A stretch of 64,000 nt of DNA from Macrostomum lignano (taxonomy: Eukaryota). Location of the stretch: contig NIVC01001636.1 of NCBI GenBank assembly GCA_002269645.1, positions 1-64,000 of the forward strand, written 5' to 3'. Position numbers and translations under genes: made by a program. Every line of letters begins with the position of its first letter. The stretch's first letter is position 1. The notes under the pieces were generated by a model. It had not been told where the DNA came from. It saw only the letters and a list, made by a program, of their open reading frames with translations, and did not search any database. Shown piece by piece: positions 863 through 50,030 of the stretch.

Positions 863-2652
863 ATGCAGCATAAGAACGGCGCCACCCAGAATGTCTTGGA
901 TCCGCTCGTAGAAGAAGCTGAGCATGAAGATCAAAAATTAGATTGCAAATTTGAGAATGTTGAAGCCATATTCGATCACCTCGGAGGCACTGGTCGATAT
1001 AACCTGCTTGTCTTAGTTATCATGGTGTATGTTAACTTATTCCCTGGAATGATCACTTTGTCAGCCAACTTCACAGCTGCCGATGTGCCATTTAACTGTT
1101 CCAAGTTCGGCTTCGAGAACTCTTCTCTGTCAAGTACCTGCGCTCCATCAACGTCTATCGATGATAATCTTCAATGTCGTGTAACTCTCAACTGCACTGA
1201 GTCAGCTGGTTTAAATGGACAACTGGATAACTCAATAAGTTCGGTCTTGAAGACATTCGAGTGTCAAAGTTTTCAGTTTAGTACAACCGGAGCGCTTCAG
1301 GTAGGACGCATCCAAAGTCCTGTGACGAGCCTCAGTAAAATCTTTAATAAGCTGCACCAAAACTCAAACTAATTTAGGAAACTGCGGTGTCCAGATTCGG
1401 TCTTGTGTGTCAGCGCGCCTGGATGTCCAACCTGGCTACCACATTCTTCTTTATTGGCTTCCTATTTGGCTGCTCATTGTACGGCGCATTGGCCGACCGA
1501 TTCGGCCGGCTCAGAATGATGCTAATTGCGCTCTGTAACATGTCCGTAGGTGCCATTGCGGCATCGCAAGCTCCCTTTTTGTGGCTTTATTGGTGCTTCC
1601 AACTGCTGATTGGAATCGGAATAGGCGGCTTCATGTCCTGCACTTTTTCCTTTGCACTGGAGAACACCGACCCAGCGCACCGAAGCATCTCGGGCTTCAA
1701 CTTGCACAACGGTTGGACTGTGGGAATTTTCCTGGGGACGTTTATTGCCTATTTTGAACGACGCTACAGCCGCCTACTGCTCTACAAAGGTTTGTGCGCT
1801 GCTGCTGCGCTGCCGCCTCTGCTCATCCTGAGCGAGTCGCCGCGCTGGCTCGTCTCCGCTCGACGCTACAAACAGGCCGACTCGGTGCTCCACCGAATCG
1901 CAAGGATCAACCGTCGATCCTTGGGTGGCGACGCTTTCTCTAGCGAGGCTATTAGTCGACGCTTTGAGAAGCGGGTTGTTAAGACAAGCGTACTGGACCT
2001 GCTCAGGCGGCCGGGCATGCGGCGAGTAACTTTTATTGCCTGGGCCATGTTCTTCAACGTGTCCATGGCCTACTACGGGATCTCTCTGGGCATCGGCGAC
2101 CTCGGTGGCAGCATCTTTGTCAACCAGCTCCTTGCTGCCGCTGTGGAAATCCCAGCTAGACTGTTGGGTATGCTGGCTAGCTATCGAATTGGTCGCCGTG
2201 TGAGCACCATGGTGTCTTTCGGGTTAGCTGGCATCTGTCTCACCGCTACGGCTTTCCTGTTTGGGGACAGTCGCTACACCGGAGCAAGGATTGCCACCGC
2301 TATGACAGGAAAGTTCTGGATTACTCTGGCATTCGATTTGGCCTGGCTATACTCTGCCGAAGTTTTCCCGACGGTTGTTAGAAGTCTTGGAGTCGGTACC
2401 GGATCAACGTTTGCCCGGGTTGGCGCAATGGTGAGCACCCTAGTGCCTGGTTTGGGGTTTGTTTGGCGCCCTTTGCCGTTTTTAATCTTGGCTGCAGGGC
2501 CACTGCTGGTGGTTCTGCTGGCTGTGGCCGCTCCGGAGACAAAGGGGCGTCGACTGCCCGACAGCATGGAGGATGGAGAGCGGCTCGCGCAGGCCGGCGG
2601 CTGCTGCGGTCGGCGACAAGAAGACAGCGGAAGGGGCGACATCGAGTTATAG
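863..2652 (+). CDS. SLC22/organic cation transporter-like MFS protein, paralog 1 (exons 863-1300 and 1378-2652; 570 aa)
   Basis: Phase-0 intron 1301-1377 (CAG|GTAGGA ... CTAATTTAG|GAA) joins two ORFs in frame. SLC22 hallmarks: Cys-rich loop after TM1, 'FGLVCQRAW', 'GALADRFGR', 'ESPRWL', 'YSAEVFPTVVRS', 'PETKG'. Confidence 0.93.
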
Positions 2653-3410
2653 ATTTGAACTATACGATACACGATACTCTCGTATTTAACTAGAAGAACT
2701 ACAGATATAACTTACTGTGACGCCTTTGAAATGCAAACCATTTTATTGCTTTATCTTTCAAGCTTGTTAGTTTCCTTAACTGCTTGTACCCATGCAGTAG
2801 TAGTGGTTACTGGTGAGTGTGCTTAAAATGTATAATTTCGCTTTTCTGATAATTTAGGGGAATAAAAATCTTTGAAAATTTTCCTAAATTTGTTTAAATG
2901 TATTATGTCTAATTGTTTTTTATTCCTGCTCAGGTAGCTAAGAAATGTGTTTACCGGAATCGGACATTTCGTCTTGTTAAAAGGCGCCTTTTGTATGTGC
3001 ATAATCTTGGAAGTACGAGCTAGTTAAGCTTCGTCACTTGAACGGACCATTTACATGAGTACAGATACTTAGCAAAAATCCTTTGGAAACTAAATTAAGC
3101 TGCATTATTCGGATGCAGAAAATACAATGTGAGACTAAACTACTTCTGGGGTTTTAAATAGAAGGTAACAATTTATTACTAAGCTCATGAAACCAATGAA
3201 CGAGCCGTATGATGAAATTATGGGTGAGCACAGTAGCAAAATGAAAAGAAAAGTAAGTCTGCTCAATTGCTGCACTTGAGTGGCTGGCTGGGTGGCTGGC
3301 AACTTGGCCAAAATAGCTCAAAAGCTAAGGGGTTAGTGTGGAACAGAAACAGCATAAATTGTAATTTCAAACAGCACGGGGTAATTTCTATTTTTCACTC
3401 TGATGCGAAA

Positions 3411-5917
3411 ATGCAAGACAACAGCAATGAAAAAGAACCCAGCAGAGATGTCTCTGACCCGCTCGTTGACGAAAACGAGCAGAAGAGGGACGACGAGCCG
3501 AGCAACTTTAAAGACATCGAAGCAGTTCTTGATCATCTCGGAGGCGCCGGTCGCTACAATTTGTTAGTTTTGGCCGCGGCGGCGTTCTTCAACGTCTTCA
3601 CAGGAATGATAACATTATCTGCCAATTTCACCTCAGCTGGCGTGCCTTTCAACTGTTCGGACTTCGGCCTCGACAATGTATCCCTGCCGGATGATTGCCA
3701 GTCTTCCGCAGCCACGAATGGCAGCTCTGCTGCGATCGACTCTCAGTGCTCAGTGACTTTCAACTGTTCCTCGGCGATGACTGAGAAGCTAGATAAGTCG
3801 GACAGTTTAAAGCTGAGGACATTCGACTGTCAAACGTTCCAATTCAGTGAAGCGGGGATGTTTCTGGTAAGTGCGGTGCATGTGTGCTGCTTAGGGATTT
3901 TACACCAACGCTAGCGGTTTGTGTAGACATCGATTTTAGCAACCTAACACTGCATAAGCAATTTTTTCTACTTTAAAACGTGTTTAAAATACACTGTAAG
4001 CTAAAGTGATAAGCTTATAGAATGAATAGAAAAAAACAGCAGCAAAATTGTCTTGAGAATCGTTCTATCGTTATTGTGCTCTATTTTTTCTGTCTTGCAT
4101 GGTAGTCTCTCTGCTTCTCTGAGTAAATTGCAACATAGATGGCTTTAAGAATTTTTCGTCTTTCTTTATGGTTGAATTGTTAAACAAGCTCACTAATACG
4201 AGTAGAGACAGTTTTCACTCGTGTTGCTTGCAAACCACTCGGTAGTTTGTAGTGACATTCGCTGAGGAGGGAATCACTGTCAAACTTTCTAAAACATTAC
4301 CTATAACATACGATGCAACTCTAGAACCAACACTAAGCAATTTCCATTGGCGATATACGGTAGAGCATCGATACATCTGTTTATGAATTCGTTAATCTTT
4401 AAACTTTGCGTCTTTGTCATACAGTGCCCATTCACTTCATTCAGAGGCTTTATCAATAGTTGTCGAAATTTTGTCACTTTTTCAAAGTGTCTTCATTGGC
4501 AACATACTATGAAGTCCTAAGAATGCTATTTTGACCTCGTAAAATCGGACCAAGCTCTTACTCATAACTTAGAGTTAGTTAGCGTATGATCGTAAAAATG
4601 TCTTTTTGCACCATTAAGGAAACAGCCGTCTCGCGATTTGGCCTGGTCTGTCAACGAGCCTGGATGTCCAACCTGGCCACAACATTCTATTTTGTGGGTT
4701 TCCTATTCGGCTGCTCAGTCTATGGCGCACTGGCGGACAGGTTCGGGCGTCAGAAAATGGCGCTAGTCTCACTGATCAATATTATAGTCTGCACCATAGC
4801 CGCGTCACAAGCTCCTCTTCTGTGGCTGTACTGGAGCCTCCAACTTCTCACTGGATTGGGAATTGGCGGCTTTATGTCGTCCACGTTTTCTTTGGCGTTA
4901 GAGAGCACCACTCCAGCCTATCGGAATATTTGGGGCATGGGCTTGCACAATGGTTGGACAATTGGCATCTACTTGGGCACGCTGATTGCTTACTTTGAGA
5001 GGCGCTACAATTTCCTGTTGCTGTACTACGGATTGACTGTGTTGGCTGCCATCCCACCGGTGCTGCTGCTGAGCGAGTCGCCACGCTGGCTCGTGTCCAC
5101 CAGGCGGTACAAGCAAGCCGACTCAGTACTCCAGCGCATCGCAAGGATCAACAGACGATCTTTAGGTGACGATAATTTTTCATCTGAGATCATTGCTCTC
5201 CGAGACAAATCCGCTTCTACAGGGGACGAAGGCATCAGCGTTCTGCAGCTGTTGAAACAGCCGAACATGCGCCTGGTCACCTGCATCGTCTGGGTCATGT
5301 TTTTTAACGTTTCCATGGCCTACTATGGGATCTGGTTAGCTATGGGCAACCTGGGTGGCAGCATATATCGCAATCAGCTGATCGCGGCTACTATTGAGAT
5401 ACCGTCTAGGCTACTGGGCATGCTGGCCAGCTATCGAATCAATCGCCGCGTGACTATCATTGTTACATACGGCTGTGCGGGCGTCTGTCTCGCAGCTACG
5501 GCATTCTTGTTCGGTGAAAGTCACCTCTCTGTAGCTCGAATTTCTACAGCAATGACAGGAAAGTTTTGGGTCCTGATTGCATTTGACCTGACTTGGCTCT
5601 ACTCTGCGGAAGTTTTTCCCACCGTGGTTCGCAGTCTGGGAGTTGGTACCGGATCTACATTTGCTAGGGCTGGGGCGATGATCAGCACTCTGGTGCCGGG
5701 GCTTGGAGTCTTCTGGCGTCCGCTGCCTTTCCTGATCTTCTCTATTGGTCCGTTGCTGGTGGTTCTGCTAGCGCTGGCTGTGCCCGAGACGCGAGGCCGT
5801 CGGCTGCCGAATAGCATGGAGGACGGAGAGCGACTCGCTAAAACCAGTCGATGTTGCAGACGGAGACGGCAGCAGGCGCAGGATATCAGCGACGGCGGCG
5901 GTGACATTGAGTTGTAG
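3411..5917 (+). CDS. SLC22/organic cation transporter-like MFS protein, paralog 2 (exons 3411-3866 and 4619-5917; 584 aa)
   Basis: ATG at 3411 (MQDNS...). Phase-0 intron 3867-4618 (CTG|GTAAGT ... TAAG|GAA) sits at the same position as in paralog 1. Same motif set, ending GDIEL*. Confidence 0.92.
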
Positions 5918-6973: not shown

Positions 6974-8065
6974 ATGTCTCCAATAAATTCATTAAACACA
7001 CTGTTCCTGAGCTGTATCGTTTCGCTTCTGCTGCTGTCAAGCGTCTCATGCAGAGAGGTGAGAACAGTTAGTGTTGGCTGCTACCGTGACGGCAGAACTC
7101 GAGACTTGCGAGGCTTGCATGGTGTGACCAAGCTGCTTGGCTTTAGTGTGCATTCCACTGCTCACACGGTCATTAGTTCTGGCATGACCTACCAGCTCTG
7201 TGCTCGGGTGTGTTCGCAAGGCGGCTTCGCCTACATGGGACTGCAGTACAGTTCCGAGTGCTACTGCGGCAACTCTTACGGAGCTCACGGCCGAGCGCCC
7301 GACAGCGACTGCAATCGACCGTGCCGCGGAAATTCGACGCAAATCTGCGGCGGTTCAAGCAGGAATTCCGTGTTCGAGCTTAAGTACACGTGTGAGCATT
7401 CGCCACGCAGGAGGCCTTAGCCTAGCGGCATAGCGCTGATCTCTTATGTGCCAGCAGCCCAGGCTCGATTCTAAGTGCAGTCACATTAATTTTGAGCAAA
7501 ATTGGAATATCAGCTTGGGTCTGAACGTTAAATTAACACCCTTGAGGGTCAACCTCAAAGACACTGGGAAGTGTACATGCCTAACGATAAATACAGTTAG
7601 GGCCGCTGTGTGTGTGTGCCCGTGCGTATGACTGCGTACGTATCCACGCGCTTGTGGGCCTGCTCAGAGAAGTCGGTGGAATGGGCAGTAAAATGTTTTT
7701 TGCCGATTGTGTGACTATGTCGCTTAAAGTGCGCCAGGGTGCACGCAGCCCCCTGCCCCTAGAATAGCTTTGATACGGATATTACTTCCTTCAATAACAT
7801 CGATCACTTCGACCAAAATTCAATTGCAACTTCAGATCCAAACCGATTCACAGCAGCAGACAAAGCCTACTTCACAGTGAGCCCTTCGAAAACGGTCCAC
7901 CAAAGCGTCAGCGCCAGCAGACTGACTGAATGCCTGTACAGGTGCGACAACGACTGTCAGGCAGCGCTTTTTATTTCCGAGCAGCAGCTCTGCCATCTAT
8001 TAAAGTTCACTCTGATACCCCAGACTCTCAGCACAGCAGCTGGGGTTTTTCTCACACTGGCCTGA
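6974..8065 (+). CDS. Secreted signal peptide + WSC domain + PAN/apple-like protein (exons 6974-7391 and 7836-8065; 215 aa)
   Basis: Hydrophobic leader. WSC motifs: GCYRD, MTYQLCARVC, YMGLQYSSECYCG, CNRPCRGN..QICGG. Phase-1 intron (T|GTGAGC ... TTCAG|AT) joins to an exon reading ECLYRCDNDCQAALF...CHLLKF, a PAN-like Cys spacing. Confidence 0.88.
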
Positions 8066-15090: not shown

Positions 15091-16717
15091 CCCTCTGTTT
15101 GTGCTAATGCCATTCTTTATGAACTTAGTAGCTTTATAAATTGATTGTTTACTACACTAGTTCATAACTTTTTCTTTGAAAGGATCAGAGTTATAATTAC
15201 CTGCTATGAGTAGAGAGTTCATGACCCTTTTCCAGAAGGTTCCGGGTTCGAAGTCAGACTGGGAGCGAATAATGTGTACCCAATGCAAGCAATCAAATTC
15301 CCTCTGGCTTCTGCAGTCCACTTTGTTGAGAAATGATACAGGAATGCCGGACTTATACTTTTACAGATCAGCAAATGGGCTTTGTGGGCAGGGTCAGAGT
15401 CAGTGAAGGGGGGAGGGGCAGGGACGTCAACATTCTTCAAGGACGGAGTTTAAACCACTCGGGCTAACTCTTTATAAATGATCTCCATGGCTAAACATAC
15501 TACTATATCTTCATATTCATTAGTGGAAAGCTCTACTTGACTATACATGCACAGAAAAAGCAAACTAAGAGTACAAAAAGGACACTAAAAATCTGGTCCA
15601 TGGTCCATACACTGGTCCATGTATCAATCGTGCCAATTTGTCATGGGTAGAGGGGTAAAAGTACGAGTACAGTCAGGGTAAAAATATAGTATAGAAAAAA
15701 AGTAACAAAGCAACGCAGGGGCAGTGGTTGGTGGTCACCCCCCATCCCAGCGATCATAGGAACCACCCCAGGAATGACACTCTGAGGCAGTATTAATGTG
15801 ATTTTTGAACAGGGTGTAGGAATGTAGAGAGAAACGGGTGTGGCAGGCAGCGGAATGTACATGAACATGTAAGTAACATGTTGTATGGAGTGGTGAAATT
15901 ATTACAGGATTTTATTAGTAATTCACAAAAAGTATGTAGAAAAAGGGTTAAAATTTTAACAATGTCGAAAAAATCAATAGAAGCATACTTAAATAGGATT
16001 TCACCTCTTTGGGGGGTGATGGGGTGGTCACCCGAGGGCAGTAGCCCCCTCTGCCCCCTGCGCCGCCACTGATAAACACGTAAAAGCTGTAACCGGGCAT
16101 TTGTCAGGTCACTGTAAAAGACGAGCTCGCAAATCCTGCAGCGTCTCCAAGCACCGCTGCTCCTGAAGTTCGGGCTGAAAGAGACAAGGAAGCTTTGCTG
16201 TTAGTGAGAGAATTTGCGTGACAAATAACTATGCATATAGGTAGCTGGGTAGTAGCTTTTTTACTGTGCCCCTTTCAGAGTGCCCAATGACGGGGTAAAC
16301 CTCCGTACGTTTTGTGCCCCTGAAGGCGGATGAAGAATTTTATCCTGGTCTATGGCACACGGGCACACGGCAAATAATAAGGGGCACAAAAAGGGACCAA
16401 TTAGGGGCCCAAAGTGGGAAAGGAGTCAAATGTAAAACTGGTCAAACGTGCAATACTCGTATATCGACCTAAGAAAATTTTGCACACACCTTGAAAAATA
16501 GGGGCCCACAGCTTGGTCCCTTAATCGTCCCATACACTGTACCCCTTCCTAACTTTTTTTTCCAAAAAGGGATCTGTGAAAAATGAAAAAATATGCTCAG
16601 TTTTAATTTTTTGCTATCAAGATTGGGTACACGATCGCTTTTGGCCTTTCTTTATTCAAAGGGGCCCAAATCGGGGGCCCCTGAATACACTTTCGACCCC
16701 TTCATTTGGTCACATAG

Positions 16718-17118
<401 letters not shown>

Positions 17119-17130
17119 TTGCAGAGCAAG

Positions 17131-19770
17131 TTAGCTCACCAATTCCTCCATCAGCTCAAGCAGTTTGTCCCTTGAATCGTGATGGTCAAGAATGACACTG
17201 TTGTGCTTGCGAATGACGCTGAGCAAAAGCGGGATTTCCCGGCAGTGCTGCATCACCATGATCAGTTCTTGAACATCGGCGTCCTCGCTGAGCAAGACCT
17301 CTTTGAACCAGTGCTTTGCATCGTCCGCTACATCGCCGACTAAATCCAGCATCAGACACATCTTCAGGGCGTCAAAGTTGAAGAAGAAATACTGGTGACA
17401 ATCGTTGAAGATGACTGGAAACAGGTGTGCAATAAACTGGCTAAGAAAATGAAGAGTTGGTCGTTCATTGATGAAGAAGCAGAACTTCCAAGCGGAGTCA
17501 GAAGTGGTGAGATGGTGCCACACAAACTCTGTCACGGTTTGCTGGCCCGTTACATCCGCTGAATTGATTCGCCGGCTGACAGAATGACCTCTCATGTTGC
17601 GCAACACTTGAATGGCGTGATCTTTTTTGTTGTACTTGACAAAGGCGATGGCGCGCAGAGTTTCCCGGACAGTTTGGGCGCAATCGGGCAGTCTGTCTAT
17701 GATGCCTGCGGAGATAGACAGAGACAAATACAGAGGAGAGATCATAGACAGAGGAGGGAGAGGGGGAGAGGGAAGATAAGGGCACGCTGCTTATGCAAGG
17801 TTTTGGATGGATAGAATGGCTGAATAAGGCAGTTGTGAGGGGGAAGTGACATACGCATCGGTTTGAACCGTTCCTAGCGGGTTTCATTTGCCTAGCACCT
17901 GAGCAAACAAGAAGCAAATAGGCTAAAGAATTGAATCCCTCATACTCTACACAATGCATTATGCTATGAGACACATAGTGAGCCAGCAGACAATATTTAA
18001 TCACTTCACCTGTCACCTTCTGCTCGGGGGTGTCCTGGCGCGCCAGCAGGACCAGGATATCGCGAACACAGTCGTAGATCTCGTGGTACTGCAGCGGAGC
18101 TTCCGAGCTGTACTTAGCGATCACCCTGATCCATGGAATGTTCATGAATGGTTGAAAGTAGAATGTCGGAGGCTGCTTGTCCACAGGCTTCAGGGTGAAG
18201 TCCTTGAAGCGGGCAAGGTGACGCGGCAGGTTATCGATGGTGCCATTAATAGCTTCTTCAATCTCCTGCTTCGAACTGTGTCCGCTTTTAAAGTACACGA
18301 TGGCATCGCGCATGAAGAAGTGGGGCATGCACTTGCTGTTCCTTTTACCACTGCTTTTGATGTGGCGTAGCAACAGCTGTAGTGCTTTTCGCGTGAGAGC
18401 CACCAAGCTTCCAGGCTGCCAGTCCTCCGGTGCCGTCTCTTCTAGCATGTAGAACAGAAGGCTCTTGGCGTGGTAGGTCTTCAGACCGTTCACAGTCTCA
18501 GACAGAACCTTCTTGATGAGGTATTTGAGCAGGATGAAGAGCTGACCCTGCACATCGTTGAGGCTGCGAAGGGTGAGCCTTTCCAAGAAAGTGGTGCTCA
18601 CACGAAGCAGCTGACCGCCCTGGCCCGGGGGCGCCGCGGTCACTAGGTGGCAGTTCGATTCACGGACGCATTGAGTCAGCGATTTGAGCAGTGAGTCACT
18701 GAGGTGAGAATCGGGATTTGGGTTTTCGACCACCTCGACGTGCGGATAACTGCAGCAACGGTAAGCTGTGACGTAATCAAAAGCCGGTCTCAGGCAGGAG
18801 CCGTATTCCGGCAGGGCTGGGTTGTTGGCTGGAAGCAGTGAAGGCACGTGGGTGAAATTTCACACTTTTTTATCTTTTTGCGTTTTCCAGTGCTACCCTG
18901 CTACCATTTCTCTTTCGACAAAGACAAAAGACAATTAAAGCCATAATCCTGGGGTGGCGTGGTCGAGAGATTAGCGGTTACCCCTGCCTGTATGAGTGTG
19001 TGCCGGTGTACTGCATTCATATGCAGTAGCCCTTGTGTATTTGCTTCGATACATGTCGGCTACTGTATCTGTATGCGTCACAGGCAATTCTGCCTTCTAC
19101 CAGCTGTTGGACGATTGCACCAAAGGTGTAGCCAAATGGTGTCACCATCCCCCTGCAAAGCAACAAGCCAAATTGCCTTGTTGTTTTGCCGTAACTTACT
19201 GTAGTTAAAAAGACATTTTAGGGTGCTTACGGAATCGTTACTTTACTTCTTTCAGTTATACTGGCATATGTCTTGTATGGATATAAAAAGTATACCATTG
19301 GAATAATTTTTTCATTTCATGGTAGCTAGATTGCTTAAGTAGCCTTGACTTCAGTTACAAATATCAAGCCTATGTTTTTCCGAAACAGCAATACAGCGCA
19401 GCCCGTGAATGACTCACTTAGTCCAGTCACCGTCACGTGACCATTATCGTAGGTAACCAGATCCTCCTCCTTGACACTTTCGCACTGGCATCTGCCGCGA
19501 AGATGGTACATTCTGCCAGGAAAGAACTCCGCCACATCAACGTCAGACTCAACATCCGTCTTGCCGATCAGTCTGCTCAAACTGTTCCCCCAGCCCTCTG
19601 AGAAGCTGCCAACGACAAAAATGTCTTCCCAGTTTCGCCTCTTCTGCTCAATTTGTTGCATGACGTCACCGCATGCAGACTGGAAGGCTGACATTTGGCA
19701 AGTGAATCCAGCCTTTTTGAATTGCGAGTGCAGACTGTTGCTCAACTGGGAGTCTGTGACGTCATCGTTT
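17131..19770 (-). CDS. Mab-21-fold nucleotidyltransferase / cGAS-like receptor (cGLR) core (exons 19770-19418, 18828-18010, 17705-17131)
   Basis: NTase motif VVGSFSEG...ESDVD, third acidic strand RPAFDYVTAY, and Mab-21 C-lobe (LRVSTTFLERL, FILLKYLIK, KTYHAKSLLFY, CMPHFF). Two phase-1 GT-AG junctions (A|GTGAGT..CTTCCAG|CC and G|GTGAAG..CCGCAG|GC) keep the frame open. Confidence 0.88.
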
Positions 19771-20189
19771 CTGTAAGTTAAGTATTGTGTACCACTGATA
19801 TAGGCATACTGATCGATGGAGCCAGTAAGTACCATAGGAAAAAATGCGAGCGTAGCGTTTTAAAATCAAGAGTTTTAATGGTAGGTTTATATGAGGCACG
19901 AATTCAAGTTAATGGCCAAGGGCATGATCGAAAGAAAATATCGATGCGTACACTTCATGTCAATGGTAGGCCGGTGTCAATTGGCCAGTACCGCAGATAA
20001 CATCGGTGAAGCAGTTGTCTATGGTCGAAATTGGAGACTAGTGATATGCAAAAGCTTGCATGCTACTTTGAGGGAGGTACGGCAGTGGCAGAGCAGGACA
20101 AATTTCTGTTTTATGTCCTTTATTGCTTGAGCGAGAGGCCAAGAGAAATTGCAGCATCTGACACGACGAGATGCATTGGAGCTGCACAC

Positions 20190-20788
20190 CGACTCTGATG
20201 GTAAGGAGTTCTACTGAATAAGTCCGCGGATCCAGTGAGAAGTAAAGTGACGGTATCTAGACCTTCTACCAGTTGAAAGCAAGGATAACCACCTATTTCC
20301 ACGGCCACTGGCAAACTCTGCGAACGGAAGTCCTACGTATTCAACGAAGCAGAAACGGGGAGTCAACTATCTTGTTTGATTCATGCATAACTTGAGCGAG
20401 AAGGCTGGGCTATCAAAGATGTATACCAACCATTGCATCACGTGGTACAACTGATGCACGTATAACAGATCTTAGATCTTTAATTTATCTGAGCGAAAAC
20501 ATTGTAAACTACATGCATTAGTAATGTAATCATCATTGATCATATTTTCTTAGGGTCACCAGGATTACGGATCTAGAGGCAGCGGGACATAGCATGGCCG
20601 ACATTATGTCCATCACCGGCCAGACATCTGAACGAACGGCACGCAGGTACCTTACAAAACGTCGAGACCAATCTCTGCAAGCGAGCAGCTCTGCTGTGAC
20701 GTCGGCATTGGCACTGCAAACTAAAGAAGGAGAAGTTAAAGGTGACGAGGCCGGACACGTAGGACCAAGCGATTCTGGGGCCAGTGAG
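20190..20788 (-). CDS. Two candidate linker exons between the ankyrin and cGLR exons (20788-20569 and 20317-~20190)
   Basis: Open frames with compatible phases: CATCCAG|C (phase 2), TCC|GTAATC (phase 0), TTCGCAG|AGT (phase 0). The final phase-2 donor is weak (CG|GTGTGC). Confidence 0.45.
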
Positions 20789-21694
20789 CTGGATGTCAAC
20801 GTGTTGTCAAACATGTAAATCACCGGCGTTAATCAGGAAAATCTGGCGACGGCGAAGTTTAGCTTTAACATCTGCACCTTCTCCGAATGCAATTTTTTTA
20901 TAGATAAGACAGGTAATGATATGAAGCTTAATATGACTTGATAGGACTTTACCCTAATTAATTTAAAATAAATTGTTGCTTCGTTTGTCTGGTTTGCCCT
21001 TTAAATAAAATATCCGTTTGTCTTACAGTTAATGACCGGTCATTAATCAGAGGACATTAACGTGAAGTGACATTTCGATCAATGTCTATGGCTGAGACGG
21101 CCGGAATCTGGTCTGCTTAATTTTAAAGACGGCTGGGGGAGACTCCTTATTGCAATCTTTTGGTAAAAAGTTGAATAATCTACGAAACAGGGACTAATAA
21201 ACCTCTTTAAAAGTCCCTGCTTTGAAATATGGGAAATTAAGGGAAAAAAGTAAAATAAGTACGGGACCACCGCCTTTGTGGGTCCCGGTTTCCCGGTTGA
21301 TATTGAGCATCACGAATTACTGATGGCTCCTTCACCAGACTTTCAAAAGTCGGATTTCAATTTTCGGAAAATTGACTCATGCATGTATAAACTTCTTCTT
21401 TCACATCTGCATTCTCCAAGTTTGTCTTGGCACCAAACAAATTAAATGCCTGCGAGCGAGCATCTATGGGTTTAAATCATAAACTTTTGGCTGACTTTAT
21501 TCCAACTGCAGGGTCAAGCTGAGAAATACGAGCGTAAAATTTAAACTTGAATTTGTCCCCTATCTGCTTGCAAAACAGAATTGAAAGGATAATTTAGCGT
21601 TATTTCCGATACTTCTTTTTATTCTATCTGACCCGGCCTACACAATTCACTATAAATTAAGCAGCCGCAGCTATAAAGTGCCTGCAGTTTGGGA

Positions 21695-21915
21695 GTGTGA
21701 AATTTCGGGTGTGAAAATTTGGAGAAGGGAAACTTCGGAGATCTGAAATTTTGGGAAAGTGAAATTTCGTGGATGTAAAATTTTGAGGATTTGAGATTTC
21801 AAAGATGTGAAACTTCGGGGATATGAAAACTCTATCAAAGACGTGAAATATTGGGTATGGGAAATTTTGAAATATGTGAACTTCCAGAATGAGATCTTAC
21901 AGGGGATGTGAAATC
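21695..21915. repeat. Degenerate ~16-bp-period repeat (GTGAAAYTTYGG-like, ~14 units)
   Basis: Recurrent gtgaaatttcggg / gtgaaaatttgg / gggaaacttcgg / gtgaaacttcgg at ~16-nt spacing. Confidence 0.7.
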
Positions 21916-21961
21916 AGACACATATTTACAACGATTGTCAGTACAATTAACCAATACTCAC

Positions 21962-22959
21962 TGCGCCTTTGCCCCCAGCTCGTCTTTTATGGCTTCACCC
22001 ATTGGCAACGCTTGTTTAGGCACTTGCTCAACACATTCTTTAGCAAGCGATGTACACGATACAGGCAGACGCTCTGCAGCCTCTGGACTGTGCTGCAGGA
22101 TGGCTTTGGCAATTTCACCCGATCCGATGAAGCAAGCAACCTGCAGAGGCGAGAATGGAGGCCGAATGGACGCAAGCTGAGGTCGAGCACCGTTACTCAG
22201 CAAAATGCGAACTGCAGGCTGGCACACGACTGAAGAAGCAAAGAACAACGGCGTGCAGCCCATCTTGTCCTGTCGATTAGCATCAGCGCCTGCGTCGATG
22301 AGCATTCGAATGACGCTCACGTTCTTGGCGAGGCACGCCTCGTGCAACGGCGTCTTTCCCGAATCGTCCTGTGCGTCGACGTCAACCTTGGCGTCAATGA
22401 GAGATTGAACTACGGCTGTGCGACCGCACCAGCTCGCGACGTGCAGCGCAGTTGAGCCATCGTTGTTCCGCCGCTTGGCATCAGCGCCTGCGCCAATCAG
22501 ATGCTCCACTACGGCCACGTGACCCTCTTGACTGGCGGCGTACAGCGGTGAGCAGCCAGTGCCGGATGGCAGGTCCACAAGGGCCCCAGCATTAAGTAGG
22601 GCCTCTGCCACAAAAATATAGCCATTGGCTGCAGCAGCATAGAGCGGCGATCTGCCATTCTTGCGCGGTCGATTCACGTCGGCTCTGTTTTCGATGAGAA
22701 GGTTCACTGCCGGTAGCAAGCCGTTCTGACTAGCGCAATAGATGGGCGTCCGACCTATATCCTCTTCAGAATTAATGTCGGCGCCAGCCTCAATGAGTGT
22801 GGTCATCACAGCGATGTGGCCGTTGGCCGTAGCCCTGTGCAAGGCCGTCCAACCGAGTGCATCACGTTCGTGAATGTCAGCACCCTTAGCGATCAGCTGC
22901 TGGACCTGTTCGTCATTGCCGTTGCGTGTTGCCAATCGCAATTCGTCAATTATTGACAT
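21962..22959 (-). CDS. Ankyrin-repeat exon (8-9 repeats), probable 5' exon of the cGLR gene
   Basis: Repeats such as GWTALHRA, GRTPIYCA, GRSPLYAA, GCSPLYAA, GSTALHVA, GKTPLHEA, GCTPLFFA. The apparent stop TGA lies inside a perfect donor, CA|GTGAGT (phase 2). Confidence 0.9.
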
Positions 22960-37793: not shown

Positions 37794-39084
37794 GGCTACC
37801 AATTCCCCATGCAGTCGTGAAGGTTTTGCGGCTACTTAAAAGCAAGAACTTCTCGCAGCTGACAGGTTCCCTGCGTATCGCTGACGGATAAGGCAAGTCA
37901 GACAAGGCAAGTCAGATAAGGCTAGTCTGATTGAGCCAAAGTCTTGTGACAAGGTCCCGTAAATAACTGATTTGGGTGTAATAGAATAAGGAGCTCGTAT
38001 TACTTGTTTAAAAAAATTTCAAAGGGTCAAGTTGAACTTCGGTGGTTTTAAGCCAGATCAATGTCTTAGGATTATTGTGTAATTTTAGTTTAGTTTTTAG
38101 CAATTTTTGGATGGTCCAAACTAGCACGATTATCATAAATAATTGAATACTACATTGACCTCTCTTTGTGTATCTGATGAACTAAAAATTTATGAAATAA
38201 CCATCAGCATAGTTCTTGAGCCTGTCTGAACAAAATCAATGAATCCACGGAAACTAGAAAATCCATACAGGTAGAGGTAAAAAGAAGGCAAAGACAAATA
38301 AGCATGAAAATTAAGACTTAAAAATAAACATAGGTTCAAAATAAATATTAAAAAACTTTGAGTGCAACCATGAGGAATCGGTCTATTGTCTATTTAATCT
38401 ATTTAAGGACATGGGCATACGATTTAAGATATTTTATAAACCCTTGTGCAAACCTGCTATGATTGATTGATGTTGTCTTTGGCCTCCTCACTCTATGCTT
38501 GAGGTTGAGGTCTCGTAAAGTAGTTCTACCTATGCACATGTACCGACGTATGATATTCTCGCACGATATATTTGCAAGATATACACCCAACTCGACCCGC
38601 ATGGCTCTACCGAGACACTACTTGACCCGCACGGCTACACCGAGATCTTAGATCACCCATCTACTGTCTATTTGCGATCCGTCGTTATCTGTGGCGATCT
38701 GCGGCGATCTGCGGCGGTCTCAGGCTATCTGCAGCGACCTACGACGATTTCTAGCAATCTGCGGTTAGCTGAGGCGATATGAAATCTGCAAGTGGCCCAA
38801 AGGCGATCTACATCGGCCGGAGCGAACTGAACATCGGCTGAGACGCGGTCTGCATCCGCCAAAGGCCACCTACGACTTTCCGAGCGAGGAGACGAACCAA
38901 GGCCGCAATTACGTTTCGTAAACCGGTATTCGTAGTCCGTCTTAGCAGTTGGTTTGCGTGATTTTAGTTTTAGGTCCTTTAGGTTGGGTATCAGGTCCTG
39001 CCAGATACTGTGTGCTTTTGTTCTTCTCTCATTTTCCGCTTTCTATTTCTTTCTTGCTGCCTTCTCTTCCTTGCCGAGCCGGTC

Positions 39085-41530
39085 ATGAGTGATCACGAGG
39101 AGTCCGCAGTCAATAGTGCCACAGGCACAGGGAGTGCTGCAGGTTTTGGTACCTCTGATTCTGAACAGAAGCCCAATGCGAGCGCTGCAAGCGCAAGTTA
39201 CACATCAGATCCGCTGCTCGCCAACACTTTTACTGCGTTGCACCGCTTCCTAGAAAGTCGATTTTCGGGAGAACCGCCGACTAGAACTCGCTATGAGAAT
39301 ATCGAATTATCATCAAGCATCAAACTTTGTCCGCCTGCACTGTTCACTATTAATACTCCCTTTGATGTCTGGAAAGCCCAGTTTAAAACCTACATTGAGA
39401 CTACCAATGTCCCTTATTTTCAACAGACTGCTGTGCTCCAATCAATTCTGGCAACCAAATGCCAAGACTTCTTTCTGAACAACAAATTAGATAACAAATC
39501 TTGTGATGAGGCGCTACGCCTCATGAGAGCACGGTACACAGACTCGAATCTCAAGGATAAAAAGTACATGGAGCTGGTTTCGACCCATCAAGAAAGCGCT
39601 AAGTCCATTGTAGAATTCTATGACCGTCTGGCCACCTGTGCCAGGATCGCTTGCTTGACTTCAGAGGTGTTGGCTGAAAGGCTCCTGTGCTGGAGTAGGA
39701 ATACAGTGGAAAGGAGTTCCTTGTTGAACGGTAAGACCAAGAGTGTTTCGGCTGCTGTACTAGTTTCCAAAGCCAAAGAGATGGTCGGTATACAGCAGCT
39801 TCTGCACCCCGCTCCGAACTCTTCTGCGAATATCCGAGTCCTTGAGACCGAGAAGGCTTCTCTGGAGGCAAGAGTAGAAGAGCTAGAGAGACTCCTTCGA
39901 CTCCAGAACCAGGCTGGTGTTTCCAAGCCTGTTGCTGTCAATCGACCACAACTATCTAACAAGCCAATCCAAAATTCAAACCAACACAAGCCACATAACA
40001 ATCACAAGAATAAACAGCCGCCAAATCATGGGGCAACTCAGCAATTTGGTACAGCGGTGTCCGATTGCTAGTCCGATTGCTAAATAGTAGCGATCAACCA
40101 GCTAGGATTGAGCGTGACCAAGAGATTGCATCTTTCAAGAGCTCGGCCATGGAGAAGTAGTACATGTAGTACCAACTGCTCTGTCTGAGAAGTATTTTTC
40201 CATAGACAACTGCAATCTCCTCAACAGTAAGCTTTCAAGATTACCACCACCAGAAAAAGGTACAGCAGAATGGCTTGTGAAACAGTTCCTACTCGACCAG
40301 TCCAGTCTGACTCCAAATCAATGAGACCTAACTTTGCGCATGCTTAACTACTTTTTAAGCCAGATATCCCAGGATAATAGTGATCTTGGTCGCACAAAGC
40401 TACATGAAATGTCAATCGATTTGATTGAGAAGGACAATCATCCGGTTCTGCTCGCTTCGAGGAGCTAGAACAACTCCAGCTCAAAAGGAGTTTTTAGATC
40501 AACATATTAGTCAATTGCTCAAGCAGGATGTAATTGAAGAGTGTGATTCAGACTGGGTATCACCGATAGTGTTAGTTAAGAAGAAAGATAGGTCTCAGAG
40601 ACTATGTATTGACTACCGAACTGTAAACAAGTTAATTCGACCCTGTAGTTTTCCATTGCCAATAATTGAGGAGTCGTTTGACAGCCTGGCTGGTTCTTCG
40701 GTGTTCAGCAGCCTTGACTTAACCTCTGCCTATTGGCAGGTGGGAATCAAAGAAGTAGACAGAGATTTTACAGCTTTCTCTTGTCCACAGGGCGCGTTTC
40801 GTTGGAAGGTAATATCATTTGGGATCAAAACAGCCCAGCGAATTTCGGTAAATTAATGCACAAGGTATTCCAGCCATTGCTTATGAAAGTTAGCCTAATT
40901 CACCTTAATGACATAAAAATAAAAGCACAGAATAATGACCAAATGATCGCGCACTTAGCGCTGGTGCTTTGGCAACTTCGCACTTCGCACTTCAGGCCAA
41001 CCTGAAGATTAAACCTGCGAAGTGTGAGCTATCCAAAGACAGAGTTATGTTCTTAGGGTTCATAGTCTCGTCTAATGGTATCGAAGCCGACCCAGCCAAG
41101 AATCGAGCAGTCCAAGAGTGGTGTAGACCGAAAGACAAGAAACAGTTTATGGCGTTTCTTGGCTTTCCCAACTATTATAGGAAATTTGTACAACGATTCT
41201 CAGTTATTGCCACGCCGCTGTACGCGCTGGCGAAAGGTGGTTAGAACGCCACGAACGCGCGTTCCAAGAACTCAAGCGCAGTTTGTGCAACCCACCGGTA
41301 TTAGCGTATCCGGACTTGTCTCCCGACATTCGTGGGTTCGTTCTCGACTGCGACAGTTCACTTGAAGGAGTTGGCGGCGTGCTATCTCAGATAGGCCCAG
41401 ATGGGTCAGAACAAGTCGTTGCGTACGCATCTAAGAAATTTTTGCAGAGTCAGTCAAATTATTGTGCAACCATGCGCGAGTTACTAGGGTTAGTACTCAT
41501 GCTAGAGCACTTTTGTACAAATCTGTGAGG
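39085..41530 (+). mobile_element. Decayed Ty3/Gypsy internal region (gag plus frameshifted RT/RNase H)
   Basis: Gag-like ORF from ATG 39085. RT motifs WVSPIVLVKKKD, LCIDYRTVN, SSLDLTSAYWQV. RNase H motifs FVLDCDSS, VAYASK. Many frameshifts and no LTR recognised. Confidence 0.88.
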
Positions 41531-41635
41531 GTACCGGCCAGGGAAAGACTATGTCGCGGCAGATATGCTGAGACAAAATCCTCGCTTTCGAGCCGATCAC
41601 TTCGACTGCCCGTCGTGCAGCATTGTACCTGAATT

Positions 41636-42350
41636 TCAAGAGAAATTTAAAATCGAGCAAGCTAAAAAGTCAGCATCAGTTAAAATCAGAAAGCAGCAAG
41701 TTGACGCTGCAGTACAATGCTCTGTAGCGTTAGTGACATATACACATAGTGTACTATGACACATAGTGCTTTTGACACTAGGAGGCGGTCCTACCGAAAC
41801 CAGCATGATGTTGAAGGAGCTATCGGTTTGGAATGTAACGAATCTAGGTGGCTTCGCCTCGGCCTCAAATTTTTTTATTAGTTGCTCCAATGAGTTGACA
41901 GAATCCTTAAGAAAAAAATCTGCTATTAACTGCTCTTGAACAGCAAAACCGGCCTCGTGTCGACGCGATGACGTAGCTTTGTCAGATCTCTCAGTTCGTG
42001 GAGGCTTTGTAAAGTAGGGCGGCATATTTGTGCTGCTGAATTGTGTGGGAACTGCATCTGGCTTCAGTCTTCTCCGGGAGAGGAGAGCATGGAGATCATC
42101 AGTAGACTTTCGCTTCTTCCTGCGCAGGTGGCTGTCTTGGCTGTCGCTGACAAAATCCGAATCGACGAAGTGCATAGAGCAGATGCGAGTGTAATTAGTT
42201 GGTTCGAACGTTGGCTCTCTAGATAGGTTACGAGCCATTTTGCAAGGAGTTCCTTGTTTTCAGGAAACCCTCATGAAATGACACTTCTTTCCCTGTTACC
42301 TGGGAGTCGTATCCGGATTTGCAGCCATATACAGCACACTTGTAGGGCAT
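41636..42350 (-). pseudogene. THAP zinc-finger ORF remnant (P-element/THAP transposase-like)
   Basis: From ATG 42350 it reads MPYKCAVYGC...SFH, frameshift, FPENKELLAKW, frameshift, RNLSR...RICSMHF...LKPDAVPTQF: the full C2CH THAP signature. Confidence 0.82.
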
Positions 42351-45660: not shown

Positions 45661-46585
45661 GTCGAATGTGAGGGGTCACACCCCCAAATTCACCCTCACC
45701 TCACACCCCGAATTCCCTTGACTTTGCCCTCCCGTAACCTCTACACAGATCCTTTGTAGTATGTTGAGGCTACCAGACGCAACATCCTGGCCTATATGTA
45801 TCGAAAAATGTTTCTTGTTCAGTAGCTATAATTGTGAGAAGTGAGAAGTGGCAGTTCGACAAGTAGCAAGGTTCTAGTCCAGCCGCAGACCACTTGTGAG
45901 CAATATATACAGTGACCGAAGAAACAGCCCTAACTATCGCTCGCCAGCTGCGTGCCTTTACATCACCTAACCCTGATCTAATCGATCTATTTAATCTGGG
46001 TCCTGTGTCAGCTCAGCGGTAACTTGTCCGACTTTCACGGAATAATCTGGTCCAATTTCGTCCGTGGCCACATTAATTTGTGGCTTTTGTAGGAAAATTG
46101 CATGTCCGGGATTGTGGTGCTATTCAAACTCATGAGGACTAACTCTTAAGGCACAGAGAGTGTACATGCCTGATGATTAGAAAGTCAGGGCCGCTGTTAC
46201 ACCCTGTGTGAGCGTGTGTATGATGCGTAACTGCGTACAGCATTGGCACAGTAAGCAGAATGGCTAGAATTGTGGGACGATTTCGCCGAAGGAGTTAGAG
46301 CAGGTGCCCACAAGCCTCCTGAAATTTTTTATCGGTATTCTAACCTGAGCTTTTTAAAAGGAATAATGTCTGCAAATTTAGGGACATTTTATCGACCACT
46401 GACGATAGGTAGCTAACCCTCGACATGACGGTATAGTCCGCTCTTTAAAAATATTACAACGAAAGCATTTCTTCAGACTTACTTTAAGTAGAATGGAGCG
46501 GATAAAACTCGCTGCTTTGTCTATAAAACCGCGCGTAATTTACCTGATATTCCTAGAATTCACCCGAACTCTGACGAAAGGTCTG

Positions 46586-47446
46586 ATGAATTTATCCGGA
46601 ATCCTGCTAAACTTTTGGTACCTCTGCCAGCTAAGTCTGATAGCGGCAGAGGCCAGGCTGTTTCGCACGAACTACATTGGCTGCTTTGAGGATTCTGGCG
46701 AGAATCGCCACCTCACAGGAATGAAGGACATTCTGACTTTTCCAGGCCATCAATTTGTTGGTTCGTCCGGTGCTCGCGCTTTGACTGGCGGCATGACTCA
46801 GGAGCGATGTGGTGGCATCTGCTCAGATGGCGGCTTCCCCTACATGGGACTGCAATACGGCATGGAGTGCTTCTGTGGAAATACCTACGGAAAGTTTAAA
46901 AATATGTCCGAAACCAGCTGCGATAAACCATGTACCGGAAATGACTCGCCAAAGTGCGGCGGATACTTCACGAACTCTGTGTACTCGTTGGAATATCTTA
47001 GTGAGTGCTTGCCACGTCTGTGTAAGGGATTTGCGGGCTTGTGGGAAATACGAAGAAAAAGCATGGTAGATACCTTATGCTTCTTCAAGATTTCAAGATG
47101 TGAAGTACAAAAATTTTGAACGGTAACATCAGTTTTATCACGTCAATGACGGGAGAAAAATGAATCACTTCTTGCTAAACCTAGTGCACTTCGGAAAATA
47201 CTTTGCACTCAAATTTCAGACCCGAATAACCTGTTCGTCCGAGGCACGAAAAGTAACTTTTCCGCCAGTATTCCAATGCACCGGACTGTGAGCGCCAGCG
47301 GACTGAAGGAGTGCGTCTACCTGTGCGAGACCGACTGCCAGAGCGTGCTTTTCGATGAAGAAAATCGCAATTGCCACCTTCTGAAGTTTGCCATGCTGCC
47401 GACAAGCCTGTCTAGCGTTACAGGAGAGTTCCTCTGCCGAGCTTGA
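46586..47446 (+). CDS. Secreted signal peptide + WSC + PAN/apple-like protein (exons 46586-47000 and 47220-47446; 213 aa)
   Basis: ATG 46586 with a hydrophobic leader and a complete WSC domain. Phase-1 intron (A|GTGAGT ... TTTCAG|AC). Exon 2 reads ECVYLCETDCQSVLF...CHLLKF and is missed by the ORF track. Confidence 0.88.
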
Positions 47447-50030
47447 CAGTTTATTCACCTGAAGCTTTGAAAACTCGAGACTTTATAAAGTCTAATTGAG
47501 AAACTAAACAGTGTTTTAACTATTTAAAAGAGCTACAAGAACTAAAATATTAAGAACTGAATGACTGAAAATGATAGACTTTAATAAATGCATCTACAAG
47601 TTTGTCACAAACAGAAATTCGTGTGCCATCAAGTTCGTAGAGTACTAGAGATTTCAGTTTAAATTGACTGAATATTCCATCTTATTGTCTCTAAATATAC
47701 TTTTACTCTTTAGAGACCATTAGGGGTTAGGTGAGTGACGAAGACCGAACGCAGAACGTGGGCACAAAGCAGTGAGCAGGGGAGCAACCCCTGGCTGTTC
47801 GACGAGTTATTTATTTGAAAGGCTGTTCGATGAGCTACGAGCGTAATATTTGAAATTGGTATTTAAGACACTAAGAATCAAAGAATGCACTACTTCGTAT
47901 TTAAAAAAAAATTATGCAGGTGTGCGACACCACGAGCAGAGCACAAGTTGGGGGTTGAAAAGCTAGCCACCCCGCGACAACCCCCCAACGCAGACGCCAC
48001 TCCGCCACCCCTAACACACTTTGTAAACGGCCTACTGCCGCCCACAAAGCACACTTAGGGGTTAGGCGAGTGACGAAGAGCGAACGCAGAACGTGGGCAC
48101 AAAGCAGCGAGCAGGGGAGCAACCCAAAACTCCAAAAAGCAGGCGAGTCAGAGGGGAGAGGAGGCAAATGATGAACAGTAGGAGCCAAGGCAAGCAGACA
48201 TAGATCGACGGGCCACTAGGTTAACGGCACTGCCATCAGAGATGTACCGCGAAACCGCCGAGCTGCGCCAATCTCCCAGCAGTTTGATGCGGTCCACGCT
48301 CAGCCCAGCATTGAAAGCAAACGTCGCTCCACCACGCCGGAGTGAGTGCGCCGAGAAGCTAGAAGCTTCCAGTCCGGCCTTGCAAAACAGGCGATGCAGG
48401 CGGTGGCGAACCCCCCGCTGAGTCAGAGGCCGCCAGGATCGCAGCGCTGATGAAACTGAGAATATGGGCAGACTGTGAGACGCATCAAAAACGCGATTCA
48501 GCTGCCAGTGATGTCAAAGCGCAGCCACAGGACACAACTTAAGAGCAGCTGCTGAGCTCTGGCCCATGACCGGGAGCTGGATGGTGTGAACGCGCTCACC
48601 GAACTGCACTGTCTTTGAACGGGCTACAAAGATGGTAACACCAGCGCGGCTGAACTTGACGTCAGATATCCTGATCGCGCTCGCTCGCCGATTGAGACGA
48701 AGCATGCCGAACCAGCCCGTGAGCACGAGAGCCCATAGAGCAGCATCTACCGGATCTGACAGCAGCAGGTGCTGCCGAATGCGCATCAGATGCTCCGGCC
48801 GGAGTGGTTGCTTAGTGGCTGGGTTCCACGACTTGCTTAGGTCCCGTCTGATTCCTTTTAGGATGAGTGGCAGAATTGGAGCTCGCGCGACTTCGTCAAG
48901 ACCGAGGCAGCAGCAATACCAGCTCAACGCTTGCACATGAAGTTGAACACTGTTGAACGAAAGTAGGCGAAGAGAGATGTCGGACAGGTAGAGAACGAGA
49001 AGCTCCACCGTGGGCTGCTCAGGTCGTTAATTTAGCCCTTGACAGAAACGACATCAGGCTCGCCAGACAGACTCGTAGGTCAGCCGTGTCGACTCCGCCA
49101 GAGACAACTCGATCAGACAAGCCGCCCGCCCCCGAAGCCGCCGCACCGCAGGGTCAGGACCTGTAAAAGCAGAAAATGGGAGGGAGCAGAGGCCAGCGCG
49201 TTGGAGGCAAATTCAAGCGGGCACACTAGCATAGTGCCATAAAAACGCATGCAAAAGTTAATGAGGCCACTCCGAGAATGAAGACGCGAAATAGGGTCAG
49301 CATAGGTTTGAAACCAGCCTGGCACATGAAAGAAGCTTTGCACAACTTTGTTTGCGAAACAGAAGAGACCAATGGTCTGAACAGTCAGATCAATCTTATC
49401 AGCGGGCAGGCAAAGCAAACCAGAGCTCGTGTCGATGTTCACACCGAGGTAGGTGACGATCTGGGCTGGGGCGCTGCTCTTCTCCCAGTTGATGTCGAAC
49501 CCGAGACGTTGGAGAAGGCCAGTTAAAAACTCATAGGCCTCTTCACACTTGGCTTTACTGTCAAAGGCAAGGCCAAAGTCATCCAAATATCCAACGACAT
49601 TGCTAAAGCCAGACCGCTGCATAATTCGGACAATCGCCTGCGAGATTCTGTGAAAAATAGACACAGAGGCAGCTGCGCCAAACATCAGCCGGGTGTCAAC
49701 CAGGTAGCACGGCGAGTCGGCTCCTTTGAATTTCCATTGCAGACCGGCTGCCGGGTAGCAAGAAGGGTGAATGCCAACGGAGCGGTAGGCATGCTTGATG
49801 TCGACTTTTGCCACAAAGCAGCCAGGACGGAGCAGACGATAAAATTCATCGATAGACTGAAAGCGGATGCGTTCCTGCTGATGGTAGTGACTGTTGATAG
49901 AATTTCCATACGGAGCGCTGGCGTCGTGAATCAGCCGGATTGATGAGCTGCCTTTAGGGATTGCTGCCAGCGGGCTGACCTTCGTAGGCTTTGTGGAAGA
50001 CTGTTCTTAGCTCTATTTTAGTTTGCTTAT

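Follow-up and report, generated by a model that had tools for sequence, protein, structure and literature searches.

In the flatworm Macrostomum lignano, a five-exon gene fuses an ankyrin array with a divergent, predicted cGAS-like nucleotidyltransferase

Does one gene of Macrostomum lignano join an ankyrin array to a cGAS-like enzyme, and could that enzyme still be active? The question is raised by the minus strand of the first 64,000 nucleotides of GenBank contig NIVC01001636.1 (assembly GCA_002269645.1), the whole stretch analysed here and called the window below. A preliminary description of this DNA had proposed an ankyrin-repeat cGAS-like receptor (cGLR) encoded by a single gene at 17131-22959 and having an intact catalytic triad. 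Here, we find it practically certain that a single five-exon minus-strand gene, BOX15_Mlig024325g2, lies at 16109-22959 and fuses ankyrin repeats to a cGAS-like part. Its product is a 933-amino-acid cytosolic protein in which nine ankyrin repeats are followed, in this order, by a flexible linker some 25 residues long, a divergent cGAS/Mab-21 nucleotidyltransferase and a C-terminal domain of about 190 amino acids. The overall reading that we favour, at a probability of roughly 60%, is that of a cGAS-like receptor which would make a nucleotide second messenger once activated. The gene itself and the class of architecture to which it belongs are already public (GenBank; Li et al. 2023, bioRxiv 10.1101/2023.02.22.529553, PMC9980059; our statements on this preprint apply to the sections of its text and tables covered here), thus the present work is a rediscovery and not a new find.

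The existing GenBank annotation of this ankyrin/Mab-21 gene is PAA65593.1 (UniProt A0A267EVP4). Aligned with the minus strand of the window, the protein is 100% identical over five exons (Table 1), and the coding sequence rebuilt from the coordinates matches every residue; coordinates in the contig and in the window are the same. The start at ATG 22959, as placed by the preliminary description, is confirmed, but its 3' end is not: the TAA at 17133-17131 is intronic, inside intron 4, and the stop is a TGA at 16111-16109 in a fifth exon that had been missed. Similarly, a direct join of 21962 to 19770 combined with the two phase-1 introns (19417-18829 and 18009-17706) does keep the frame open for 914 amino acids, as had been predicted, but the annotated protein is longer. 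The mRNA splices from 17140 to 16174, and because the fifth exon (16174-16109) replaces the terminal VS and stop with 21 residues (PELQEQRCLETLQDLRARLLQ), the product has 933 amino acids instead of 914. A (GTCT)n/(AGAC)100 microsatellite occupies 16716-17118 of intron 4 and begins 12 nucleotides past the TAA earlier taken as the stop. Two further UniProt entries, A0A1I8G0B9 (P0002) and A0A1I8FYI1 (P0114), are mis-modelled versions of PAA65593.1 from the older ML2 assembly. In both of them ankyrin residues are skipped (…ANGHIA/ALLNAG…; here and below a slash marks an exon border), another acceptor is used in exon 3 and the protein ends in …VYFKSGH. In A0A1I8G0B9 the frame is additionally shifted by 1 nucleotide where exon 1 ends (…DELGQRRTFQS…).

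The junction between the ankyrin and Mab-21 parts can be read from the DNA itself. From ATG 22959 the ankyrin open reading frame (ORF) runs for 333 residues and ends in GCG CAG TGA; the GTGAGT donor takes in the last base of the CAG codon together with the TGA. The sequence is therefore as first described, with the stop inside a phase-2 donor (CA/GTGAGT, exon end at 21962) and a phase-2 acceptor (TTACAG/A) at 19770; CA and A joined across 21962/19770 give Gln (Q333). A stop within the donor is automatic here, since any phase-2 intron opening with GTGA or GTAA puts a TGA or TAA into the frame; the same intron in paralogues also has an in-donor stop (GG/GTGAGT and AA/GTAAGT). Its length is 2191 nucleotides in this copy versus 105 in paralogue P0008 and 432 in paralogue P0016, at the same position and in the same phase. 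A degenerate tandem array with a 16-nucleotide period and at least seven copies is found in it at 21691-21828. It had also been suggested that two linker exons within this intron could yield a 1030-amino-acid form. Such a form is arithmetically possible and arbitrary: four alternative two-exon sets of 348 nucleotides stay open, all of them with weak splice sites, none of 37 paralogues gave an alignment within intron 1, and the two longest minus-strand ORFs of the intron had no Pfam match. We thus abandoned it, as neither paralogues, domains nor splice sites support it. Intron 3 is peculiar to this copy and its near-identical relatives, and coding is continuous at this place in P0008, P0016 and two metagenome sequences from JGI (L001 and L002); from the sequences, it looks like a recent intron gain or a spliced-out insertion.

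Evidence from RNA comes with the annotation itself, which is a genome-guided transcriptome (StringTie/TACO and de novo assembly) with ORFs called by TransDecoder and with transcripts split wherever experiments had mapped a spliced-leader or poly(A) site (Wudarski 2017, PMC5730564). The RNA-seq-derived coding sequence of PAA65593.1 carries the exact predicted ankyrin-to-Mab-21 junction (…GAKAQ/NDDVTDSQ…), and so spans 21962-19770 as expected of a single gene. The same junction is present in an independent UniProt model of a copy that is 92-97% identical. Moreover, paralogues of about 40% identity (PAA59246.1 and PAA65214.1) have a phase-2 intron at the same place, 8-9 residues ahead of an LSxxLH motif, and share a phase-1 intron at the position of intron 2; their introns are 105-432 nucleotides long. 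Most ankyrin-bearing paralogues have no Met in the 75 residues ahead of the GS motif of the enzyme part, and because none lies between the junction and this motif, most of them could not produce the Mab-21 part as a separate protein. The JGI relatives L001 and L002 were considered as transcript evidence for the fusion and rejected, as they are without the ankyrin region and still contain intron 2.

Exon 1 is a clear ankyrin exon by Pfam (Ank_2, Table 1) and is joined to the Mab-21 exons in the transcript-derived coding sequence, so that ankyrin repeats and cGLR core stand in one polypeptide, the Ankyrin-cGLR architecture. An AlphaFold model of P0001, a protein 92-97% identical to this one (mean predicted local distance difference test, pLDDT, 83), places nine repeats at residues 1-312, followed by a disordered stretch at 314-336 (pLDDT below 50) that coincides with the exon 1/2 junction, and then by the enzyme core. 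Searches with the ankyrin region included were uninformative on the enzyme: Foldseek with the ankyrin-containing model returned only DARPins and ankyrins, the whole-protein sequence search against PDB only ankyrin-repeat proteins, and PADLOC only ankyrin models. With the spliced Mab-21 part as the query, the only matches were M. lignano proteins and a few metagenome fragments; PAA65593.1 sits in the 90%-identity cluster of the best match, and more than 20 of the matches have ankyrin repeats N-terminal to the same domain. The order of ankyrin, Mab-21 and C-terminal domain is repeated in dozens of paralogues, and BOX15_Mlig024325g2 is one member of a large Macrostomum-specific ankyrin-cGLR expansion. 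Metagenome relatives are a protein of 'MAG: Kangiellaceae bacterium' (P0012, V2I33_19315, 347 amino acids) and proteins on the JGI contigs L001 (3300040779) and L002 (3300040801), all 41-57% identical to this family, and L002 keeps a gap resembling a spliceosomal intron. They are almost certainly flatworm DNA, which in the bacterial bin is contamination.

Is the enzyme part equipped for catalysis? At the level of motifs, the intact catalytic triad that had been claimed is supported. GSFSEG, SDVDV and FDYV are present and supply the signature h-G-[GS] ... [DE]-h-[DE] ... [DE] as G387-S388, D409-V-D411 and D468 of PAA65593.1. An alignment of 21 paralogues with 28-48% identity shows the G, the S and S-D-x-D without exception and the third D in at least 90%; very few other columns of the N-lobe are invariant or nearly so. 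A degenerate active site of the MAB21L1/2 or MiD49/51 type was not found, the GS and the acidic triad being intact and conserved. In predicted models, the signature falls on or near strands (beta-1 and the loop that follows, the first residues of beta-2, and an adjacent strand), and in the model of paralogue P0006 the equivalent D79 and D81 open strand 79-91. The motifs also resemble those of coral cGLRs (GS-h-SEG and VD-h-V-x-A). This pattern of conservation argues for selection on catalysis.

The fold that would carry these residues is very probably the bilobed cGAS/Mab-21 nucleotidyltransferase fold in a highly divergent form, to judge from structure prediction. By sequence, only the C-terminal helical lobe of the enzyme part is recognisable. 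Mab-21_C (PF20266, gathering cut-off 24.1 bits) scored 28.2 bits with exon 3 alone and 25.9 bits with the spliced Mab-21 part, 14 of 15 family members match it, and a family profile run against PDB found mouse and human cGAS (E ~2e-4, in the helical lobe) and Sp-cGLR1 (E 2e-3). The fold test was performed on paralogue P0006, which aligns with 97% of the combined Mab-21 and C-terminal part and is 42% identical there. Its AlphaFold model (pLDDT 87.5, predicted template modelling score, pTM, 0.89) was compared with PDB by Foldseek, and human and porcine cGAS were the best matches (E ~1e-7, target-normalised TM score 0.5-0.58), followed by MB21D2, Sp-cGLR1 (8gjy), MAB21L1 and MiD51/49. The cGAS-like fold expected by the preliminary description is in line with both results. 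Compared with human, mouse and porcine cGAS (6ct9, 4k8v and 4jlz) and with Sp-cGLR1, the flatworm protein is alike in its predicted bilobed fold, in the GS/DxD/D signature and in a sequence-detectable Mab-21_C lobe; unlike them, it has no basic N-terminal tail, its core has an isoelectric point (pI) of 6.7, its GS-DxD loop is longer, and ankyrin and C-terminal domains are added.

The C-terminal domain, encoded by exon 4 and marked by the motifs RLPDCA, DSAWKFCF, NFDAL and EDADxQEL, is matched by no Pfam family. Out of 1.84 billion proteins, a profile of it picked up no more than 73 cluster representatives; ten of these were looked up, and every one was from M. lignano. In the matches examined the domain follows the Mab-21 core and mostly ends the protein, usually with an ankyrin array ahead of the core; in a caspase fusion described below, it is followed by an ankyrin array and the caspase domain. 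It packs against the enzyme core in the P0006 model. An assignment of the domain as TRIF-NTD- or TPR-like was tried and set aside as a lead only: the Pfam signals are at E 0.05 or worse in 3 of 15 members, these three are probably near-identical JGI/MAG relatives and so not independent, and the Foldseek hint (4bsx) has a probability of 0.51 and a TM score of 0.33.

How would such a protein work? In the reading we favour, the receptor would be held inactive until a ligand binds, and the ligand-bound enzyme would make a cyclic or linear oligonucleotide from nucleoside triphosphates for an innate-immune receptor, with the ankyrin array, the C-terminal domain or both serving in ligand recognition or regulation. 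We consider catalytic activity of this very product to be slightly better than an even bet. Several results weigh against it or against the reading as a whole. The spacing from GS to DxD is 21 residues versus about 12 in coral cGLRs, which amounts to a 9-residue insertion. The Mab-21 nucleotidyltransferase family PF03281 gave no match at E up to 1 with the window protein or five paralogues, an N-lobe profile found no nucleotidyltransferase in PDB and only a chance SH3 match, and hhalign against a profile of four coral cGLRs aligned only the RVSTTFLE region (62 columns, probability 0.6%). We ascribe the missing PF03281 and PDB matches of the N-lobe to a core that is too divergent for sequence methods. 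The orientation of the ankyrin array relative to the enzyme is not predicted with confidence in the P0001 model (pTM 0.53). Finally, five M. lignano paralogues were cloned without their ankyrin region for an enzyme screen (Table S3, rows 89-93, of Li et al. 2023, PMC9980059), and none of them is among the 15 active enzymes described in the sections covered, a set drawn from insects, anemones, molluscs, hydras and corals. As ligands, the legend of Fig. 2 names 45-bp double-stranded DNA (dsDNA) and poly I:C.

The insertion, the divergence of the N-lobe and the lack of an M. lignano enzyme among those 15 would suit a non-enzymatic Mab-21 scaffold of the MAB21L1 or MiD49/51 kind, an adaptor that would keep the fold and maybe nucleotide binding, produce no second messenger, and recruit partners through its ankyrin array and C-terminal domain. 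MB21D2, MAB21L1 and MiD49/51 (7lt1, 5eom and 4oaf) share the fold with comparable structural scores, MAB21L1 and MiD51/49 being among the matches of P0006 already listed, and the loss of DxD in the caspase-fused relative (CDMNW) indicates that non-catalytic members of the family exist. However, G-S, D-x-D and the third D are the best-conserved N-lobe columns across the 21 diverged paralogues, as expected under selection for catalysis, and in the fold search MAB21L1 and MiD51 come after cGAS. Moreover, MAB21L1/2/3 are described as being without a predicted functional active site (Li et al. 2023, PMC9980059), unlike the flatworm protein with its intact and conserved signature. We thus regard a scaffold as rather unlikely.

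If the product is the receptor that we favour, what would activate it? A protein, or some other molecule that is not a nucleic acid, would be a more probable ligand than dsDNA or double-stranded RNA (dsRNA), and we hold a non-nucleic-acid ligand only tentatively, at somewhat less than even odds. In Li et al. 2023 (PMC9980059), cGLRs sensing dsDNA or dsRNA have a pI above 8.5, and acidic ones are proposed to have non-nucleic-acid ligands. The core of the window protein, at pI 6.7, is not basic, and the whole protein has a pI of 6.1; this comparison makes a protein or other ligand somewhat likelier than a nucleic acid, although the argument is weak. The same values speak against a conventional nucleic-acid sensor for dsRNA or dsDNA, similar to cGAS, Drosophila cGLR1 or Sp-cGLR1, in which the ankyrin repeats would serve only localisation or oligomerisation. 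The best structural matches, DNA-bound cGAS and the dsRNA-sensing Sp-cGLR1, would fit a sensor of this type, and dsDNA and dsRNA are the only cGLR ligands so far identified according to the sections covered of Li et al. 2023. On the other hand, the five paralogues in that screen were exposed to nucleic-acid pathogen-associated molecular patterns and are not reported there among the active enzymes. We judge such a sensor to be quite improbable.

The weakest alternative, and a highly improbable one, is that of two separate genes or mRNAs, with the ankyrin ORF ending at its TGA and the Mab-21 part starting from ATG 19835 or by spliced-leader trans-splicing at 19770: M. lignano does trans-splice about 39% of its genes, with about 7% of assembled transcripts being multi-gene precursors (PMC5730564), the in-frame ATG 19835 does open an ORF running into exon 2, and intron 1 is unusually long (2.2 kb), but the transcript-based coding sequence joins both parts although its pipeline cut at evidenced trans-splice sites, distant paralogues keep the phase-2 intron at a far shorter length, a Met between junction and GS motif is missing from most paralogues, and the junction recurs in the UniProt model of the 92-97% identical copy.

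Ankyrin- and TPR-fused cGLRs are known minority architectures (Li et al. 2023, PMC9980059). In Table S2 of this preprint, as far as covered, the M. lignano entries with Ank_2 matches are PAA67649.1, PAA58690.1, PAA68676.1, PAA86972.1, PAA45980.1 and PAA68216.1; PAA65593.1 was absent from the examined part of the tables, and M. lignano from the examined text of the species Table S5. The M. lignano paralogues of that work are like the window protein in species, in family, in the motifs GS[FY][SA]EGWGN ... SD[IV]DV ... RVSTTFLE, in the RLPDCA domain and in N-terminal Ank_2; PAA65593.1 is a different paralogue, and their screened constructs were without the ankyrin region. Ankyrin-, TPR- and death-domain-fused cGLRs of other invertebrates, e.g., Stylophora pistillata (Fig. 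1C, 4C and S2A of Li et al. 2023), likewise combine a protein-interaction module with a cGLR core. The flatworm core is, however, far more divergent (about 12-16% identity to solved cGAS/cGLR structures, no PF03281 match), and the protein has the extra C-terminal domain found essentially only in Macrostomum. We found no paper on BOX15_Mlig024325g2 itself, no paper after Li et al. 2023 characterising an ankyrin-cGLR, and no literature statement on STING in M. lignano.

Two kinds of relatives from outside the window have unusual architectures. PAA80948.1 (P0107, BOX15_Mlig018330g1, 1444 amino acids) and PAA59752.1 (P0081) are Mab-21-like/caspase fusions of M. lignano in a transcript-based model. 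In this architecture an ankyrin array comes first, the Mab-21-like core and the C-terminal domain of the family come next, and another ankyrin array then leads to Peptidase_C14 (E=2.7e-25); in the core the GS motif is retained, DxD is changed to CDMNW, and the active site is probably dead, as far as the motifs tell. In P0038 (UniProt A0A1I8GXZ3, 1346 amino acids) two complete Mab-21 units stand in tandem, with GS motifs at 70 and 816. It may be a true tandem cGLR, comparable to the multi-cGLR fusions in the sections covered of Li et al., or else a product of two adjacent genes that the older annotation merged.

Elsewhere in the window, transposon-derived stretches were found at 39010-42238, 48514-54017 and 59997-63635. 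Individual ORFs in these stretches and other recognisable genes are included in Table 1.

Table 1. Positions of the exons, introns and coding sites of BOX15_Mlig024325g2, followed by other features of the window.
Feature	Positions	Strand	Remarks
Coding exon 1	21962..22959	-	Residues 1-332 and two bases of the Q333 codon; PAA65593.1 mapping, Pfam Ank_2 E=1e-62
Ankyrin repeats, nine	22959-22024	-	About amino acids 1-312; the disordered linker begins after them in exon 1
Intron 1	19771..21961	-	Phase 2, 2191 nt, GTGAGT donor, TTACAG acceptor; no supported exon
Coding exon 2	19418..19770	-	N-terminal 'spine' helices, then the beginning of the nucleotidyltransferase core; the last base of the exon is base 1 of the T451 codon
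G387-S388 codons	19605..19610	-	GS motif after strand beta-1; columns invariant in 21 paralogues
D409-V410-D411 codons	19536..19544	-	Acidic pair, start of strand beta-2; S-D-x-D invariant in 21 paralogues
Intron 2	18829..19417	-	Phase 1, 589 nt, CTAA/GTGAGT ... CTTCCAG/CC; position and phase kept in P0008 and P0016
Coding exon 3	18010..18828	-	Third acidic residue D468, RVSTTFLE motif, Mab-21_C helical lobe
D468 codon	18778-18776	-	Third acidic residue, exon 3
Mab-21_C helical lobe	18538-18305	-	Pfam PF20266, 28.2 bits against a cut-off of 24.1
Intron 3	17706..18009	-	Phase 1, 304 nt, ACAG/GTGAAG ... TCCGCAG/GC
Coding exon 4	17140..17705	-	Family-specific C-terminal domain of about 190 amino acids
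Intron 4	16175..17139	-	Phase 0, 965 nt, GAATTG/GTGAGC ... CTCTTTCAG/CC (exon 5 opens CCCGAA)
Coding exon 5	16109..16174	-	21 residues (PELQEQRCLETLQDLRARLLQ), then TGA stop at 16111-16109; PAA65593.1 mapping
Two tandem paralogous MFS/sugar-transporter (SLC22-like) genes	863-5917	+	One long ORF per gene matching Sugar_tr (E=2e-29 and 1e-25); each with an upstream exon-like ORF
Two WSC carbohydrate-binding-domain ORFs	6974-7420, 46493-47119	+	E=3e-18 and 1e-16
THAP-domain ORF	41636-42238	-	
Reverse-transcriptase fragment	49113-49814	-	
Intact 1260-amino-acid gag-pol ORF	50235-54017		Ty3/gypsy-like by reading alone
Second gag-pol, fragmented	59997-63635		

The contribution of this work is a verified gene model with five exons, 933 amino acids and the coordinates of the catalytic codons; the rest is public annotation and a published catalogue. 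For ankyrin-fused cGLRs as a class, no ligand or product has been reported, and M. lignano is a tractable laboratory flatworm, with transgenesis reported (Wudarski 2017, PMC5730564), that has a very large ankyrin-cGLR expansion. Most flatworms are without cGLRs beyond Mab21-like proteins, according to the sections covered of Li et al. 2023 (PMC9980059). It is conceivable, and in our estimate unlikely, that the Macrostomum clade with ankyrin array, cGLR core and C-terminal domain is activated by a non-nucleic-acid ligand through the array or the C-terminal domain, possibly signalling through a receptor other than canonical STING. If so, this clade would be signalling in a phylum from which most other cGLRs have disappeared. 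The ankyrin/Mab-21-like/caspase fusion PAA80948.1 is a hint of direct coupling to a protease effector. Activation by a non-nucleic-acid ligand, if true, would widen the range of what cGAS-like receptors sense.

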